Below are positions 6,102 through 55,447 of a stretch of 64,000 nt of DNA, piece after piece. The notes beneath the pieces are model-generated. The model did not search any database, had not been told where the DNA came from, and saw only the letters and a list, made by a program, of their open reading frames with translations. The position numbers and the translations under genes were made by a program. This DNA comes from Trichosphaerium sp. ATCC 40318 (lineage: Eukaryota; Protista; Tubulinea), in assembly GCA_038496445.1 (NCBI GenBank), contig JALMLS010000215.1, positions 124,001 to 188,000 of the forward strand, written 5' to 3'. Numbering within the stretch: position 1 is the stretch's first letter; each line of letters opens with the position of its first letter.

Positions 6102-7304
6102 ATGTCGCTAAAACATCTCCAATGTGAAGAATACATTAAATCTATTCAACACGTGCCACCAGAGACGCTTACACAGATACTGAGTCACTTGGGCAAGTGG
6201 GAGCGAATAAGCACAACAAGAGTTTGTCATTTATTTAATAATGTCATTCGCAATAACATTGGCTTTGACAAACTATTATTGTATGTACCAACAGATTGTC
6301 ATGTTCTGAAAGGCAGTCCATTACTTAAAAACACTCGCATTATTTGTAAACCCGAAGCTCTATCAGAAGCGGACTATTCTTGTCTTTCTGGTGTTAACTC
6401 AATAGATGTCTCATATTCAAAAATAACAGATTCAGGCGTTCTTGATTTGCTTGATGGAGGAAGGCATACGATCAAATACATTGATTTGACAGACACACAA
6501 ATAACAGATGTTTCATTAAAAGCACTCAGAGGTGTAAAGGAAATTCACCTTGCGAGGTGTACGAATATTACTGTTCAAGGTATCAAGCACCTCAATAATG
6601 CACGTGATATTACACTCCAGAATCCTTTGGATTCGTGGCTTCAACACCTCGGCAATCTAAACAAAGTTGACATAAATAAAGGGGAATCTGTTTCAGATGA
6701 AGGAATCAAAGCATTAATACATGTCAATGATCTAAGCTTGAGATGGTGTAAAATGATAACAGACTCAGGCTTGAAGCAATTGACTGATGTACGGCACCTT
6801 GGAATCTTTCGCAGTTCTATGATTACAAGTATACCTTTGGCTAATCTCAGACACCTTAAAATATTCATGTGTGGTAATATCACGGATGAAGGTTTGAAGG
6901 AGTTGATAAATCTTGAGACACTTCATGTCGTTGATTGCCCGAAGATTACAAGCATAACATTGGCTAATCTCAGACACCTTAGAATGCGCAAGAGTGATAT
7001 TACAGGTGAAGGTTTGAAGAAGTTGGACAATCTTGAGACACTTGAAATCAATAATTGTGATATGATTACAAGTGTACCATTGACTAACCTAAGACACCTT
7101 GACCTATTCTTATGTCATGAAATTATGGATGAAGGTTTGATGAAGTTGATCAATCTTGAGACACTTAATGTCGTTAATTGTTACTATATTCATGCTGATT
7201 GTTTAAAACACTTGAAATCTGTCAAGCATATTTCTGCCTCTCAACAAGGCCATACTAATCCTATAAAATATGAAGCTGAGAAATTGGGTATCACTGTAAA
7301 ATAA
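6102..7304 (+). CDS. Intronless F-box-like + leucine-rich repeat protein
   Basis: N-terminal VPPETLTQILSHL..RVCHLFN (F-box-like); repeats such as LRHLxIxxCxxITDEGL. Confidence 0.85.
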   Translation: MSLKHLQCEEYIKSIQHVPPETLTQILSHLGKWERISTTRVCHLFNNVIRNNIGFDKLLLYVPTDCHVLKGSPLLKNTRIICKPEALSEADYSCLSGVNSIDVSYSKITDSGVLDLLDGGRHTIKYIDLTDTQITDVSLKALRGVKEIHLARCTNITVQGIKHLNNARDITLQNPLDSWLQHLGNLNKVDINKGESVSDEGIKALIHVNDLSLRWCKMITDSGLKQLTDVRHLGIFRSSMITSIPLANLRHLKIFMCGNITDEGLKELINLETLHVVDCPKITSITLANLRHLRMRKSDITGEGLKKLDNLETLEINNCDMITSVPLTNLRHLDLFLCHEIMDEGLMKLINLETLNVVNCYYIHADCLKHLKSVKHISASQQGHTNPIKYEAEKLGITVK

Positions 7305-14731: not shown

Positions 14732-15582
14732 TTAGTCTGTATAAGGAAAACCCGTTTTAGATTTAATTTCTTGAAATTCCTCATCAGATATACTATCGCA
14801 CTTACTAATGAAACAATACTCTAGCTCCGGCATTAACCCATGAATACCTTTTGCAGTAACAGCAGGAGAACTACTAAGCGACAAGTTTTTGATACCTTTT
14901 AAAGGTAGAATACCTTCATCAGTTAATAAAGAAGCACTACTAACCTTAGGCTAGATATTCCAGCAAGTGCCGCAATATGTTCGTCCTTAACATTACTGGG
15001 ATTTGCTGATACATTCAAAAATAGCTTGTGTATGCCTGCTAGGGCTGCTATCCAAATCCCAGAGTATGTACGTAATGGATAAATACCAAGCACAAGAGTA
15101 TGAACACCTTTGAAGTAGTTTCTTCCTACACCATCAAAATTACAGGAACCATTCACTCTAACAGTGTGTGCACCACGGAGAGCCTTTAGACCTGAACCAC
15201 TTACTTTTTGTGTACAAGCCTGTATACTAATAGTATGAACACCTGCAAAGCATTTAACCATCTCATCTGTGAGACGTAAGCTGCATTCATAAGTGAAACA
15301 CACTTTTTTTAAACCTTTGAAGAGAAATATTGGAGCCAAATCGCAAAATCTTACCATAGAATGACGTACAATAGCCTTACAAGGTATAATTTGCCTACAA
15401 TTTTGTTCTGTAACTCTAACTGCGTGATATCCAACGTAATCATGTATTATAGAAGAAAAAAGCCTACAGCATTGTCCTGCACTACAACGAGTCTTGTCTG
15501 ATTCCATTTGAGTAAATATAGCGCATAGAAGCTCTAAAGGCATAATATCAATGATGGTAACGTTGTTTCCAGTAGTCGCCAT
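14732..15582 (-). CDS. Intronless F-box-like/LRR protein (GVH-type repeats) with a frameshift near 14940
   Basis: MPLELLCAIF F-box-like motif; AGVHTISI-type repeats; LRR text (SSASLLTDEGILPLKGIKNLSL..) continues in another frame to TAA at 14732. Confidence 0.75.
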
Positions 15583-18573: not shown

Positions 18574-21040
18574 ATGGCAACAAAGTCTAGGAGCTCCCGT
18601 ACAAGAAGATCTGCAGCTTCAAAAGAACAAGCCAATAGCTTGTTTATCGAAGCAAAAGAAGCGCACGAAGCGTACCTCTTCGAAGAGGCTATTGGCTTAT
18701 ACAAACAAGGTATCTAAATACGTCAGTTTACTTGGCTTACTTGTTTAAAAGCCATAAAACTACAACCAAAGGCGGCTGATACATACAACTGCCTTGGAAA
18801 CGCTCTCAGGTTCGTTAACGATTAAGCCTGTCAGTGTTACGTTGCTAAATTGTTTTAACCGTTAGGGATGGCCCAAAAGATTACGACGGAGCGCATGCGG
18901 CGTATTTAAAAGCCATAAGCATCAAACCAGATTTGTACACGGCGCACTTCAACTTGGCACTGCTTAGAGAGAAACAGGTATTCCCTAGCGAACGTGTGCT
19001 CAGTTGTAGTGTTTTCAACTGTTTTAAAGAAATGTTGTATTCGCGTTTTTCATTTTACTGTCTCTGTGCCGCTTCCAAACATTCGTAGCGCGTAGGACAA
19101 CATAAAGTAACTGAAAGAACGGTAAACTACATCGTCGTTAAACTAAACTCATAAAGGGAAACTTGGAAGCTTCAGAAGTAGCTATACGTAAGGCCATTGA
19201 GTACAATCCAGGATTTGGGATGGCCCACCAGCGTTTGGGCGATCTACTTCAACGTACAGCACGAGGTAAGACAGTTTTTCTTCTGTAAATATATACAAAT
19301 TTTTTTTGGTTAAACGCTGACACGTACTCAGGTGAGGAGGCTTGTAACCACTACGGAAGCGCTCTGATGTTAGATCCTACTGATTCAATGCTTTATTTTA
19401 AGCTTGGCATGGCCAAGTTCAGTCTGAGTACGACACCTTTGTAAGCCATGGAAAAAATTAACTTATTTTTAGAAAAGTACGACGATGCTATTGAAGCGTT
19501 TAGAAGAGGCCTGAAATTGAGTCCAAACCATATACCAACATTAATAACTCTTGGTGTCGCATTAACAGTCCGTCAAGATTATACAGAGGTGAGTTAAGAA
19601 GGTTTTATTTCGAAAAGAAAAGAAACGATTAACATGTCAAAAATCAATAAGAAAAAAAGAAGATTGTTCTTTCAAGTAAAGTCCTAATAATTCTAGGCGG
19701 TTAAAGTATATAAGCGTGTTATACAATTAGATAATACTGTTAATGTATACACAAACTTGGGTACAGCGCTAATCGGTCTAGAAAAATGGAAAGACGCAAT
19801 GAAAGGTAATTTTCGAATTTTTTTTTTGACAGCAAAACTTTAACTTTTCTTAGTGCTCCAGTTGGCAATAAAACGCAATCCTAAGGATACAGCTGCACTA
19901 ATGAACTTGGCTACTGTACTTGTAAAACTAAATCAATGGGATAAAGCTGTTGAAACGTACAAATACGTAAGCAAACAACTATTACTTATCATTTCTAAGT
20001 TGGCTTAATTACTTTTGTTGTAGGTTCTTCGTGTTAATCCTAACCTATCAATTACTGTCGCCATGGCGCTTGGAGATGGTTATTCAGAACGTAAAGAGAT
20101 AGAAAGCGCTATTGCTCAGTACAGTGCAATACTAAAAAACAGCTCAAGAGTTCGTATGAGCCACGCTGCACTAGAGAAGCTCTACGCAATGTACTCAGAA
20201 CGGGAAAGTATAGAAGATCTGGTACGTCTTTGAGCAGATTTATCAACAGTTAAATTGACTCTTGTATTCAGGAGTGTTTTTGCGAAGAGCTGAGCAAGTC
20301 TTCCCCAGTCTCACCAATTTATTATTCCATACTATCACTACTCTACAAAAAGATGAACAAATATGATAAAGCAATAGCGTGTATAACATCAGCAATACGG
20401 CTTGATCCTGGTACGATTCAGTACTATAAATACAAAACCGTTTACTTCATAATTTTTATTTCTTGTCTTTGTTTTTCGTCCATTTGTCTCCTGGTGCTTT
20501 GTATCGCGTTAATAAATGATGTAGTTTCATATGAGCACCGCGTAGACAAAGGGTTATTATTTACAATCAAAGAGAACTGGGCATTGGCTGAGAAGGAGTA
20601 CAGGCATGCTATGAACCTTAGCGTGGATAACAGCGAGATTGCTGTGAAACTGGCAAGCGTTCTTGAGCATCAATCGAAATACACAGAAGCTAGGTGAGTT
20701 ATTGGTTTTTTTGACACTTAGAATTCAATGAATTAAAAAGCTGCATAACGTGTACTCAAATTGATTGTTTTGGTTCTAAATGATCTGTCGTAGAGCGCTG
20801 TATTCCTCCGAGGATATGGATGAGCAAGTTAATCGGTTAGACGCTATTTTAAAAGAGGAGAGGGCGAAAAACAAACAAAAACCAGCAGAAAATACTACGC
20901 CTTCAGCTTCAACGACAGAGCCATCAAAGTCATCAGATATGTTACCTCTTTCTCATTGGGTAGTACTTGGTGGTTTAGCCATCGGATTGGTTGCACTATT
21001 TGTAGTTACCAGGAAGAAAACACCAAGTGCACCTTTGTAA
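18574..21040 (+). CDS. TPR-repeat protein with C-terminal membrane anchor, multi-exon
   Basis: Repeated TPR motifs (AIKLQPKAADTYNCLGNAL; AISIKPDLYTAHFNLA; AIRLDP); terminal TM WVVLGGLAIGLVALFVV followed by RKK. Confidence 0.85.
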
Positions 21041-21160
21041 ATAAACTAACAAACAAAAATGTTGACCATGTCGTTTTTATCACAAAAGTCAATTTTTGTT
21101 CTTGTAAGGTTCATTGCTTTTTCTCGCACTCTAGAATTCTCTTTTTTTCTTTATGTTTTT

Positions 21161-21360
21161 GGGAAGGCCGCCATCAAGGGCATCTACAGGCGAAGTAGGC
21201 CTGTAGCACCGCCCTTGGGCATCCTGTATTCCCCCAGAAATTCATTGTAACGGGTACAGGTGGAGCTATCAAACTACACATTATTTTCCTTACTCACTAG
21301 CAAATTGTGTGAGCTTTGAAAGGATTACTATGTGTAGGTTGACGTACTTAGTTTAAGGCT
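21161..21360 (-). ncRNA. RNU12: U12 minor spliceosomal snRNA split by an intron (exon 1 ~21360-21348, intron 21347-21297, exon 2 21296-~21161)
   Basis: Spliced 5' end AGCCUUAAACUAA|UGAGUAAGGAAAAUAA matches conserved U12 (human AUGCCUUAAACUUAUGAGUAAGGAAAAUAA). Stem IIa GUGUAGUU-UGAU-AGCUCCAC, Sm-like site AAUUUCUGG, long 3' stem-loop III with loop CCUACUUCG (human CCUACUUUG, the 65K-binding loop). Spliced length ~149 nt. Confidence 0.93.
21297..21347 (-). other. 51-nt major-class-like spliceosomal intron inside U12 snRNA
   Basis: GTACGT donor, GCTCAC branch-like motif, CTAG acceptor, same style as mRNA introns in this window. Its removal restores the contiguous U12 5' motif. Confidence 0.88.
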
Positions 21361-21777
21361 AAGCGATATGTAAAAAACTGAACTTGAAAATAGCGCTGTG
21401 GCGTTTATTTGTTGTGGTTTTGATGGTGAAAGACTGAAAAAAAAAAAATGACCACATAATGCCTGCAACGTATTACTCATGCGCGTTGTGTGATTTGTGG
21501 CGGTTGTCCGCGCCAAAGAAAATTGTGTGTATTAAAATACAACGCAGAGGTATTGTAGTCCATTAACGTAGCGTGAAGGAGCGTAATAAGTATGTTTTAG
21601 TCATTTTGAACGAACTATCTAGCTAGTGGGTTCTTATAGTCCTCGTTTGCGTAGACTAGATAGTAGATGTTGCTAGGTGGACATTAACAGGACATGTATG
21701 AGTGTTGTGAAGAAAAGCCACGACTGTTTTTTGCCAGTTCAGGTTTTCTGTTTTTTTTTTGAAAGACATTATTCACA

Positions 21778-22860
21778 ATGGCTGTCACTATTAGGCGTAT
21801 CCGCGTAAGTTTAAATCACTATACTCCTTATTGCGTCTAAAATTCAATATTAGACAGAAGATTTATTCAGAGTACAACACAGAAACCTTACATGTCTTCC
21901 TGAAAACTATCAAATGAAATATTACTTTTACCACATTCTAACATGGCCACAACTTTCATATGTTGCAGAAGACACTAAAGGACGTATTGTTGGATACGTA
22001 CTAGCAAAAATGTACGCAACAGATAAGAGCTACATACTATTTTGCCATAATCGCCGTTAATGCGTCGTTACCTCTTGTAAATCTCACCACCGTGCTAGGG
22101 AAGATAAACAAGATGAAGATGATAAGGATTGGCAACCACATGGTCATATTACGTCTATTGCGGTCATGGGTTCCTATCGTAAACTGGGTTTAGCTACAAA
22201 ACTCATGAGACAAGCTCGTATCCTAAACAGAAAGTTTTTTCTTTCCATTTTTAAACCCATCATGATCTCTTTTCGCTTATTTACGCCTTGACAACACAAT
22301 CAGAGTATTCAATGGTTGAATGTTATCATGCTCATTATGTATCTTTACATGTGCGCCGGTCTAACCGCGCAGCGCTTCATCTATACTCTATCGCACTTGC
22401 CTTTGAGTACGTATTTTTTTTGATAAGAATTTTTTTCTTACCATCACCCGTTTTGCCGTGTTATTTTGTGCGTTATTAATTCTGTATTTTAGAACGTATG
22501 ACATTGAAGAAGGTTACTACGCTGATGGGGAGGATGCCTTTGCAATGGTAAAGTGGTTTTTAGTGAAAATTGAAACTTTTTTGTAAAAACATTTATTATG
22601 TTCTTTTCTCCGCATAATCGTAAATTTTAAAACTCTCAATAACGCCACCAATACCGAGTATATTTTACATATCATCTATCACAGTAGAAACTAAAACACG
22701 CAATTTATAATGACATTAAATTGGTTTTGTTTCAATTTTTTGCTTTATTTTTAAATCGTTGTGTGCTCACTATCTTCTCTTCTAGAAAATGATTTTACCA
22801 AAAGATCCTATGGAAGTATTTAAACACATTGATCGCTCACACGTTCAAATACCTGAATGA
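21778..22860 (+). CDS. NAA10: N-alpha-acetyltransferase 10 (NatA catalytic subunit, Ard1), 6 exons
   Basis: [90 protein letters not shown]. Confidence 0.97.
22218..22303 (+). other. U12-type (minor) GT-AG intron in NAA10
   Basis: Donor GTATCCTA; branch CCTTGAC at 22286-22292 with the A 12 nt from the acceptor; no pyrimidine tract after the branch; splicing keeps the frame (..RQA-Q-YSM..). Confidence 0.8.
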
Positions 22861-53986: not shown

Positions 53987-55447
53987 ATGGAAGAAAAAGA
54001 TAAATCCGCCCTTGCTACGCTGCCAATTGAAGCAATAGTACATATACTCAAACAAGGGACGTATACACTTCGTTCAGCACAGACATGCCATCTTTTGCGA
54101 GATATTGTCAACACCCACATTGGATATGGTCGTATCTTAGTTAAAAGTGAAAAAGAGATTCATATGCTTTCTGGGAGCCCATTACTCAAGAATACAAATA
54201 TTGACTTGGAGTATTACAAACCACAAACAAATGAGTACTGTATCAAAGCATTAGCAGGTGTACATACAATCAACTTGAATTTCAAAACAGTAACAAACAA
54301 GGGTATTGCAGCATTGGCAGGTGTACACAAAATTAGCTTGGCAACTACCAATGTGACAGATGAAGGTTTAAGGTCATTGGCAGGTGTACACACTATTGAT
54401 TTAAATTCTTGTAAATTCATAACAGACGAAGGTGTTATGGCTTTAACAGGTGTACATGAGATTAACTTGACAAATACAAAGGTAACAGATAATGGATTGA
54501 AGGCACTGGCAGGTGTACACACTATTGTCTTGAATGATTGTTATTCAATAACAGACGAGGGAATTAAGGCATTGGCAGGTGTACATCACATTGATTTATT
54601 GGGTACGAAAGTAACAGATGAAGGTCTCAAGGCGTTGGCAGGTGTACACACTATCGACCTATGCTATTGTAGATCAATAACAGATAACGGTGTAAAAGCT
54701 TTGGCAGGTGTACATAATATTGGGTTAACAAGTACAAATGTAACAGATGAAGTTTTGAAGGCTTTGGCAGGTGTACACACAATTAATTTGCAGCAATGTG
54801 CAATAGCAGGTTCAGGTATCAAAGCATTGGTAGGTGTACATGAAATTGACTTGTCACAAACAAATGTAACAGATGATGTTTTGAAGGCGTTGGTAGGCGT
54901 ACACACAATTGACCTATGCTATTGTAGATCAATAACAGATGATGGTATAAAAGCTTTGGCAGGTGTACACACAATCTATTTGAAGCAATGCAAATCAATA
55001 ACAGATTCAGGTATCAAAGCGTTGGCAGGTGTACATGAAATTGACTTATCAGAGACAAATGTAACAGATGAAGGTTTGAAGGCGTTGGTAGGCGTACACA
55101 CTATCAACTTGTACTATTGTGAATCAATAACAGACAACGGTGTAAAAGCTTTGGCAGGTGTACACACTATTGATTTAAATTTTTGTAAATCAATAACAGA
55201 TGAAGGTGTTATGGCTTTAGCAGGTGTACATGAGATTAACTTGACACGTACAAAGGTAACAGACGATGGATTGAAGGCACTGGCAGGTGTACATACTATT
55301 ACACTGTGTAGTTGTAGATCAATAACATATGAGGGTATAACAGCATTGGCAGGTGTACATACTATCAACTTTCGTAACATGCAACATATAGCAGATGATA
55401 ACCGTCTCCAAGCATTGGCAGGAGTAGTAAGGATAAACAGATACTAG
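53987..55447 (+). CDS. Intronless F-box-like + LRR protein with 18 LAGVH repeats of 21/22 aa
   Basis: LATLPIEAIVHIL..QTCHLLR; 18 GVHxIxL units. Confidence 0.9.
   Translation: MEEKDKSALATLPIEAIVHILKQGTYTLRSAQTCHLLRDIVNTHIGYGRILVKSEKEIHMLSGSPLLKNTNIDLEYYKPQTNEYCIKALAGVHTINLNFKTVTNKGIAALAGVHKISLATTNVTDEGLRSLAGVHTIDLNSCKFITDEGVMALTGVHEINLTNTKVTDNGLKALAGVHTIVLNDCYSITDEGIKALAGVHHIDLLGTKVTDEGLKALAGVHTIDLCYCRSITDNGVKALAGVHNIGLTSTNVTDEVLKALAGVHTINLQQCAIAGSGIKALVGVHEIDLSQTNVTDDVLKALVGVHTIDLCYCRSITDDGIKALAGVHTIYLKQCKSITDSGIKALAGVHEIDLSETNVTDEGLKALVGVHTINLYYCESITDNGVKALAGVHTIDLNFCKSITDEGVMALAGVHEINLTRTKVTDDGLKALAGVHTITLCSCRSITYEGITALAGVHTINFRNMQHIADDNRLQALAGVVRINRY

Follow-up and report, generated by a model that had tools for sequence, protein, structure and literature searches.

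A U12 snRNA gene of Trichosphaerium sp. with a major-class intron complementary to its own second exon

Introns in snRNA genes have provided early evidence on the catalytic centre of the spliceosome. They have been documented in the U6, U2, U1 and U5 genes of fungi, for example in U6 of S. pombe, in many other fungal U6 genes and in U2, U1 and U5 of Rhodotorula hasegawae (PMC5855946, PMC2396436). A review of these introns calls them "otherwise not conserved in sequence" and mentions no antisense relation to a flanking exon (PMC5855946). In this work we focused on a stretch of 64,000 nucleotides from Trichosphaerium sp. ATCC 40318 (the window), in which an earlier note had described a U12 gene whose intron is antisense to the exon that follows it and could lock the precursor in a hairpin. 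The locus raises the question of whether such a relation is a relic of the way in which the intron arose, a device controlling the supply of U12, or an accident. Full-text literature searches found no published intron in a U12 gene, and an snRNA gene whose intron is antisense to the functional core of the RNA it encodes appears to be a new combination.

The minus strand from 21360 to approximately 21161 is the expressed U12 snRNA gene of the organism (Table 1). An Rfam scan of the whole window at gathering thresholds gave no match; a local scan of the genomic DNA matched the U12 family (RF00007) at 21161-21303 on the minus strand with 39.2 bits (E = 4e-06), against a gathering threshold of 53 bits. 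In this alignment the branch-site box, the Sm region and the 3' stem-loop fit well and 7 positions of the 5' stem are deleted, the low score in genomic DNA coinciding with the displacement of the 5' segment by the intron. The segment missing from the collinear match, GCCUUAAAC, which corresponds to helix I with U6atac and to stem I, lies 51 nt upstream and is supplied by exon 1. The gene reads exon 1 (AGCCUUAAACUAA), intron (GUACGUCAACCUACACAUAGUAAUCCUUUCAAAGCUCACACAAUUUGCUAG) and the start of exon 2 (UGAGUAAGGAAAAUAAUGUGUAG…), and joining 21348 to 21296 yields AGCCUUAAACUAAUGAGUAAGGAAAAUAA, which is the U12 family consensus less one base. The branch-site box near the 5' end, UGAGUAAGGAAAAUAA (GUAAGGAAU-like), is canonical, showing no mismatch to the RF00007 consensus. 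In the map of human U12, nucleotides 1-13 form helix I with U6atac, nucleotides 14-17 (AUGA) are a bridge beside the AGAGAA box of U6atac, and nucleotides 18-24 bind the branch site (PMC3201867). The intron lies between the A and the UGA of this bridge, i.e. at the junction of helix I and the branch-site box.

An identification as Physarum U12 was rejected, the published Physarum box being GCAAAGAA and the box found here canonical. Nearby Rfam matches to snoR27, TUG1, the Lig thermometer and STnc180 (E = 0.4-10, far under gathering) were set aside as chance. In a standard annotation of the window no U12 is reported, this genuine U12 being pushed under the gathering threshold by its intron. Surveys that use covariance-model matches to judge whether a minor spliceosome is present or has been lost (method in PMC10639083) could miss such genes, the intron having lowered this U12 to 39 bits.

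Table 1. Coordinates of the U12 gene, its parts and associated features in the window
Feature	Position	Strand	Content or role	Evidence
U12 snRNA gene	21161..21360	-	precursor ~200 nt; mature ~149 nt once spliced	Rfam RF00007 local match and RNA contigs
Exon 1, AGCCUUAAACUAA	21348..21360	-	U6atac-pairing segment (helix I) and 5' arm of stem I	fits Rfam consensus 5' end after joining to exon 2
U2-type spliceosomal intron, 51 nt	21297..21347	-	GUACGU … GCUCAC … UAG	X1 spliced versus X2 unspliced contigs
Intron arm of inverted repeat	21320..21347	-	intron nt 1-28, including 5' splice site	repeat search; pair probabilities 0.68-1.00
Likely branch site GCUCAC	21309..21314	-	branch A 13 nt before 3' splice site; apical helix with G|UGAGU	
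Hairpin loop ACAAUUUGCUA, 11 nt	21298..21308	-	no U12 counterpart	MFE structures
Exon-2 hairpin arm	21265..21296	-	UGA of AUGA bridge, AAGGAA box, linker, stem IIa 5' arm and loop	pair list; U12 map (PMC3201867)
Branch-site recognition box AAGGAA	21286..21291	-	within exon-2 hairpin arm	
Sm site AAUUUCUGG	21234..21242	-		aligned to Sm region of U12 model
3' stem-loop III	21170..21220	-	apical loop CCUACUUCG fits conserved 65K-binding loop	CM alignment gccUACUUUgc; stable in all folds
A-rich tract AAAAACAUAAAGAAAAAAAGAGAA	21142..21160	-	genome-encoded; begins ~2 bases past U12 3' end	
U12-type intron of NAA10 (third intron)	22218..22303	+	GUAUCCU … CCUUGAC … CAG	joint 22217|22304 in 4/4 RNA runs

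The intron, which has GU…AG ends, is of the major class (U2-type) and is removed in vivo. Its 5' splice site, GUACGU, resembles those of the verified neighbouring introns at 22012 (GUACGC) and 22407 (GUACGU), and CUCAC or GCUCAC is also found near the 3' end of the RNA-verified introns 22012-22098 and 22548-22785. A U12-type class was rejected, the 5' splice site being GUACGU and not RUAUCCUU, and the true U12-type intron in the neighbourhood differing from it. The latter intron, in NAA10, is spliced in the same RNA runs, and the minor spliceosome is in use. As the intron of the U12 gene is U2-type and removed in vivo, maturation of the U12 transcript requires major-type splicing.

Splicing and the 5' end were read from four public runs whose Logan contigs, which show presence and not quantities, were aligned to positions 20300-22700. 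All four are RNA, since their contigs lack six introns of the neighbourhood. One run, X2, contains a 213-nt contig (record 6) that is unspliced, collinear with 21167-21360 and runs on into CCCGTACTCTGCGTTGATA, the complement of the SMART template-switch oligonucleotide. This oligonucleotide abuts 21360, and the 5' end of the U12 RNA therefore lies at that position; the contig is a 5'-complete, capped, unspliced precursor starting there. A second run of the same sample, X1, contains a 512-nt contig that aligned as far as 21300 and continued as a loose end, TTTAAGGCTCCC. Allowing for a single mismatch, at 21297, this contig (record 4) reads …CCTTACTCA|TTAGTTTAAGGCT followed by CCC, which corresponds to 21296 joined to 21348; the loose end can also be given as TTTAAGGCT plus CCC after …ACTCA TTAG, the spliced RNA reading AGCCUUAAACUAA|UGAGUAAGG. 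Both contigs stop at 21360, before CCC in the one and the SMART oligonucleotide in the other. We read the X1 contig as a spliced, 5'-complete capped RNA with the junction 21348|21296, which was recognised by eye in one contig, with no automatic joint call and a short side of 13 nt.

A non-polyadenylated snRNA precursor probably occurs in oligo-dT/SMART libraries because of the A-rich tract just past the gene (Table 1), which, judging from its letters, is probably an internal oligo-dT priming site that brings in 3'-extended U12 precursors. The X1 contig is unbroken from 20801 to 21360 and comprises the last exon and 3' UTR of a convergent TPR gene, the spacer and the spliced U12; the 3' ends of the two genes are only about 120 nt apart. 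The contig represents either U12 readthrough of at least 360 nt or a merging of overlapping convergent transcripts by the assembler. Single-base differences between RNA and window were seen at 21023 and 21061 (C>G, G>A) in X1, the former also in the run X6, all in the spacer or 3' UTR, and none over the 194 nt of U12 and intron covered by X2. The strain or allele behind the RNA runs differs slightly from that of the window, by too little to inform on the hairpin.

Like the fungal snRNA introns, that of the U12 gene is short, has a canonical 5' splice site, branch site and 3' splice site, lies in the functional core, is removed by the spliceosome and interrupts a working gene copy. It differs from them in three respects: its host is U12, a minor-spliceosome snRNA; it is of the major class, so that a core RNA of the minor spliceosome depends on the major one for its maturation; and it is antisense to its own exon, a relation that PMC5855946 does not mention for the known snRNA introns. 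Its position at helix I and the branch-site box extends to the minor spliceosome the argument that snRNA introns have supported on the catalytic centre.

The antisense relation itself withstood re-examination. The earlier note had counted 23 matches in 29 positions between the intron and the reverse complement of the acceptor G plus the start of exon 2, two of the differences being G-U pairs; a recount returned the same 23/29, with one 5-nt gap, and two of the six differences do place an intron G opposite an exon U. A repeat search delimited inverted arms at 21269-21291 and 21320-21342 (23 nt, 78% complementary, 28 nt apart). The pairing is longer than had been stated, reaching from the GU of the 5' splice site to the branch site. 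According to the partition function, 27 bp (p = 0.68-1.00, duplex −24.4 kcal/mol) join intron nt 1-38 to exon-2 nt 1-32, from the 5' splice-site GU down to A38·U1. The hairpin is found in the MFE and centroid structures of the 198-200-nt precursor (−67.7 kcal/mol for 198 nt, z = −4.05), and the ensemble energy loses 23.6 kcal/mol when the intron is barred from pairing.

In these predicted folds the hairpin buries GCUCAC, the G of the 3' splice site, UGAGUAAGGA and the 5' arm of stem IIa. The claim that it would hide AAGGA, the 5' arm of stem IIa, the branch point and the 3' splice junction is thus borne out in the predicted MFE and ensemble: the unpaired fraction of GCUCAC, the 3' splice-site G, UGAGU and AAGGA does not exceed 3% in the precursor ensemble, and the branch site is more than 98% paired. 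Folding of growing prefixes predicts a branch site that is about 84% free until some 8 nt of exon 2 have emerged and less than 5% free thereafter, as the helix zips outward. In silico, the splice signals are covered by a stable structure that is better than that of the controls. The apical 6 bp of the helix arise where two motifs under separate constraints, GCUCAC as the local branch consensus and the universal UGAGU of U12, happen to be complementary.

Comparison of the pairing energy with shuffled introns, which the earlier note had put forward as its first check, left the real intron at the extreme of the distribution. When the intron interior was shuffled, 1/2000 sequences reached −24.4 kcal/mol (mononucleotide and dinucleotide shuffles), and 1/5000 did as well when GUACGU, GCUCAC and UAG were held fixed. 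The unconstrained arm alone (−16.9) was equalled by 7/5000 shuffles, or by 22/5000 when pairing was allowed anywhere in mature U12. Plain DNA identity is less striking: the alignment score of 13.5 was reached by 36/5000 shuffles (p≈0.007) and by 0.36% of genomic 53-mers. Among pseudo-introns picked by regular expression, only 1 of 283 equalled the pairing of the U12 intron. Fold-backs are modestly enriched in the window (57 vs 37 per 8000).

Real sequence is a more lenient background, and it is here that an accidental origin finds its arguments. A short, pyrimidine-leaning intron carrying the local branch consensus would lie beside the purine-rich, invariant 5' region of U12, and the remainder would be luck. 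Real 51-mers of the window were as good against the same exon-2 target in 0.30% of cases, at 28 loci in the window alone, many of them through the G+C-rich end of the target; any 51-mer against its own next 40 nt was as good in 0.7-0.8% of cases, and random genomic pairs in 0.5-0.8%. For three of the seven RNA-verified neighbouring introns, the duplex with the exon that follows has −21.7 to −23.1 kcal/mol, and the pairing of GCUCAC with GUGAGU is forced by the two constrained motifs.

Against luck stand the 1/5000 obtained with composition and signals fixed, the 7/5000 of the unconstrained arm, and pairing that is collinear across nearly the whole intron. Matching for composition, moreover, gave z values of −2.8, +1.3, −0.5, −1.9, −0.1, −1.7 and −0.1 for the seven neighbours and −4.85 for the U12 intron, for which 0/1000 shuffles were as good. 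It removes most of the excess of the neighbours and not the U12 signal, and the proposal that all introns here pair with their downstream exon was rejected on this ground. In our judgement the complementarity is genuine, and its rarity is of the order of 10^-3, a figure to be read in the knowledge that the relation was noticed post hoc, as one among many features scanned, and that part of it has a trivial cause. Chance as the whole explanation seems to us somewhat unlikely.

Our preferred reading, held tentatively and at rather less than even confidence, is that the intron began as an inverted copy of the U12 sequence beside it and is in decay, and that the hairpin slows splicing as a by-product. 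An inverted templated copy of the adjoining U12 sequence would have been inserted into the gene at a break or by a template switch, and the insert would then have gained or kept its splice signals (5' splice site, branch site, 3' splice site). A pyrimidine tract and an ACUCA-like branch motif are already present in the reverse complement of UGAGUAAGG, and that of UGAGUAAGGAAAA would likewise give both at no cost. Neutral decay would since have left the copy with about 79% identity and one 5-nt indel. The hairpin would keep the precursor from pairing with minor-intron branch sites and would probably slow its own splicing, with which the capped unspliced RNA is consistent; this RNA is one contig, from a poly(A)-primed library that enriches unprocessed RNA, and contigs are not quantitative.

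For an origin by copying rather than a preservation by selection speak the position of the copy, inverted and directly adjoining its template, and the tolerance of a 5-nt bulge and four disruptive mismatches. The share of G·U pairs among the mismatches, 2/6, is about the neutral one-third, because only A>G and C>U keep pairing if the intron side alone mutates. Against it, the identity statistic, which is the one relevant to duplication, reaches only p≈0.007 (shuffles) and 0.0036 (genomic), and is weaker than the statistic for pairing energy, the direction expected if pairing and not ancestry had been preserved. The 11-nt loop and the GUACGU 5' end are untemplated, having no counterpart in U12, and a single snap-back step is therefore insufficient.

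Templated inverted insertions at breaks, of the snap-back or template-switch kind, are made in end joining by polymerase theta, and recent intron gains of Daphnia exemplify intron gain through break repair. As in such insertions, the U12 insert measures tens of bases and would be an inverted copy of the sequence beside its insertion point. It departs from them in its identity of only 23/29, its 5-nt indel and a loop and 5' splice site that were not copied from the flank. The two intron junctions share only a trivial 3-nt repeat (CUA). As an inverted copy, the intron would be a concrete, datable candidate for intron gain by inverted templated insertion; the other outcome of interest is a simple RNA gate on snRNA supply.

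Such a gate would be a hairpin maintained by selection that holds pre-U12 inert and makes its splicing dependent on a helicase, temperature or condition, so that the supply of U12 would be tuned and the minor spliceosome coupled to the activity of the major one. The pairing energy (1/5000, z −4.4 to −4.9) is far more unusual than the identity (36/5000), as this idea would have it, two of the mismatches are G·U, all splice signals and the functional box are occluded in the predicted fold, and the branch site is predicted to stay accessible for no longer than it takes about 8 nt of exon 2 to be made. Spliced and unspliced capped U12 RNAs were moreover assembled from different runs of one sample. 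The G·U share, however, is the neutral expectation, a 5-nt bulge and four non-pairing mismatches interrupt the helix, capture bias can explain the unspliced contig, and contigs give presence and not ratios. We regard a selected gate as distinctly unlikely.

Splice signals hidden by local structure are familiar from the thermosensor intron of yeast APE2, the stem at MAPT exon 10 and riboswitch-controlled introns of fungi. As in these systems, the branch site and 3' splice site of pre-U12 are predicted to lie within a helix that would have to be melted or opened by a helicase, with a kinetic window for recognition. Unlike them, the predicted U12 hairpin has the functional core of the mature RNA as one of its strands, its host is a non-coding snRNA, and it involves neither an alternative splice site nor a ligand.

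A further proposal is that the intron acts in trans: its arm, with UCCUU opposite AAGGA, would be an extended branch-site mimic bound by the mature U12 snRNP, on the precursor or on the excised intron, with feedback on U12 production as the result, or the complementarity would once have guided a foreign intron into U12 by reverse splicing. Between the arm and mature U12 the pairing energy is −18.3 kcal/mol, over a region that is single-stranded in the snRNP. Decoy splice signals with feedback have a precedent in the USSE of the U11-48K and U11/U12-65K genes, which are protein-coding and in which conserved tandem U12-type 5' splice sites are bound by U11 (PMC8329584). Like the USSE, the intron would be a minor-intron signal mimic in the gene for a minor-spliceosome component, open to recognition by a minor snRNP, which could steer its own pathway by way of a major-type splicing event; unlike the USSE, it would imitate a branch site, sits in the very gene for U12 and has pairing in cis as a simpler fate. 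For introns of U6 and U2, an origin by reverse splicing has been put forward (PMC5855946), an argument echoed by the insertion in a bridge of the catalytic core; it fits in part, agreeing with the insertion site and disagreeing with the intron class. Since pairing in cis is kinetically and entropically favoured, the mimic departs from the canonical bulged-A geometry (a U and not an A comes after UCCUU), the arm is unusual against whole U12 only at 22/5000, and reverse splicing in the minor spliceosome should leave a U12-type and not a U2-type intron, we hold this proposal to be very improbable.

More generally, that the self-antisense intron is a selected control device, in which pre-U12 would fold on its own branch-site box and splice signals and be gated by the major spliceosome, a helicase or temperature, or sensed by the mature U12 snRNP through the mimic, seems to us improbable. 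If true, it would be a direct regulatory link at the RNA level between the two spliceosomes.

Relatives of the locus were searched for in several collections. No orthologous U12 locus was found in metagenome or genome collections or beside NAA10 homologues. Scans of metagenomes for an intron-containing U12 gave 0 and 26 matches; none of the 26, inspected by eye, has a GCCUUAAAC-type exon 1 or a recognisable U12 body, and they were discarded as chance. Bacterial and archaeal genomes gave 0 matches to an intron-containing U12. A search with the exon-2 peptide of NAA10 returned only fragments 77-87% identical, none from a close relative, and four loci with NAA10 homologues held no U12 at E≤0.1. 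The window also contains single-exon F-box/leucine-rich-repeat ORFs at 6102-7304, 14923-15582 and 53987-55447, of which the one of 486 aa has its best relatives (59% identical over 38% of the length) in a marine protist transcriptome set. Matches so distant indicate that the protein collection holds no close relative of the organism.

On the other side of the U12 gene, the gene for the N-alpha-acetyltransferase NAA10 (21761-22860, plus strand; six exons in the RNA contigs) lies head-to-head with it, the start sites being about 400 bp apart. A minor-intron gene therefore shares its promoter region with the U12 gene. On the opposite flank, intron 1 of the TPR/tail-anchored gene (20410-20523) inversely matches the start of its own downstream exon (20524-20554, plus strand), with about 16/19 positions in the best block, a duplex of −23.1 kcal/mol and 23 intron:exon pairs in the local MFE; its composition-matched z of −2.8 (11/1000) makes it weaker than the U12 case.
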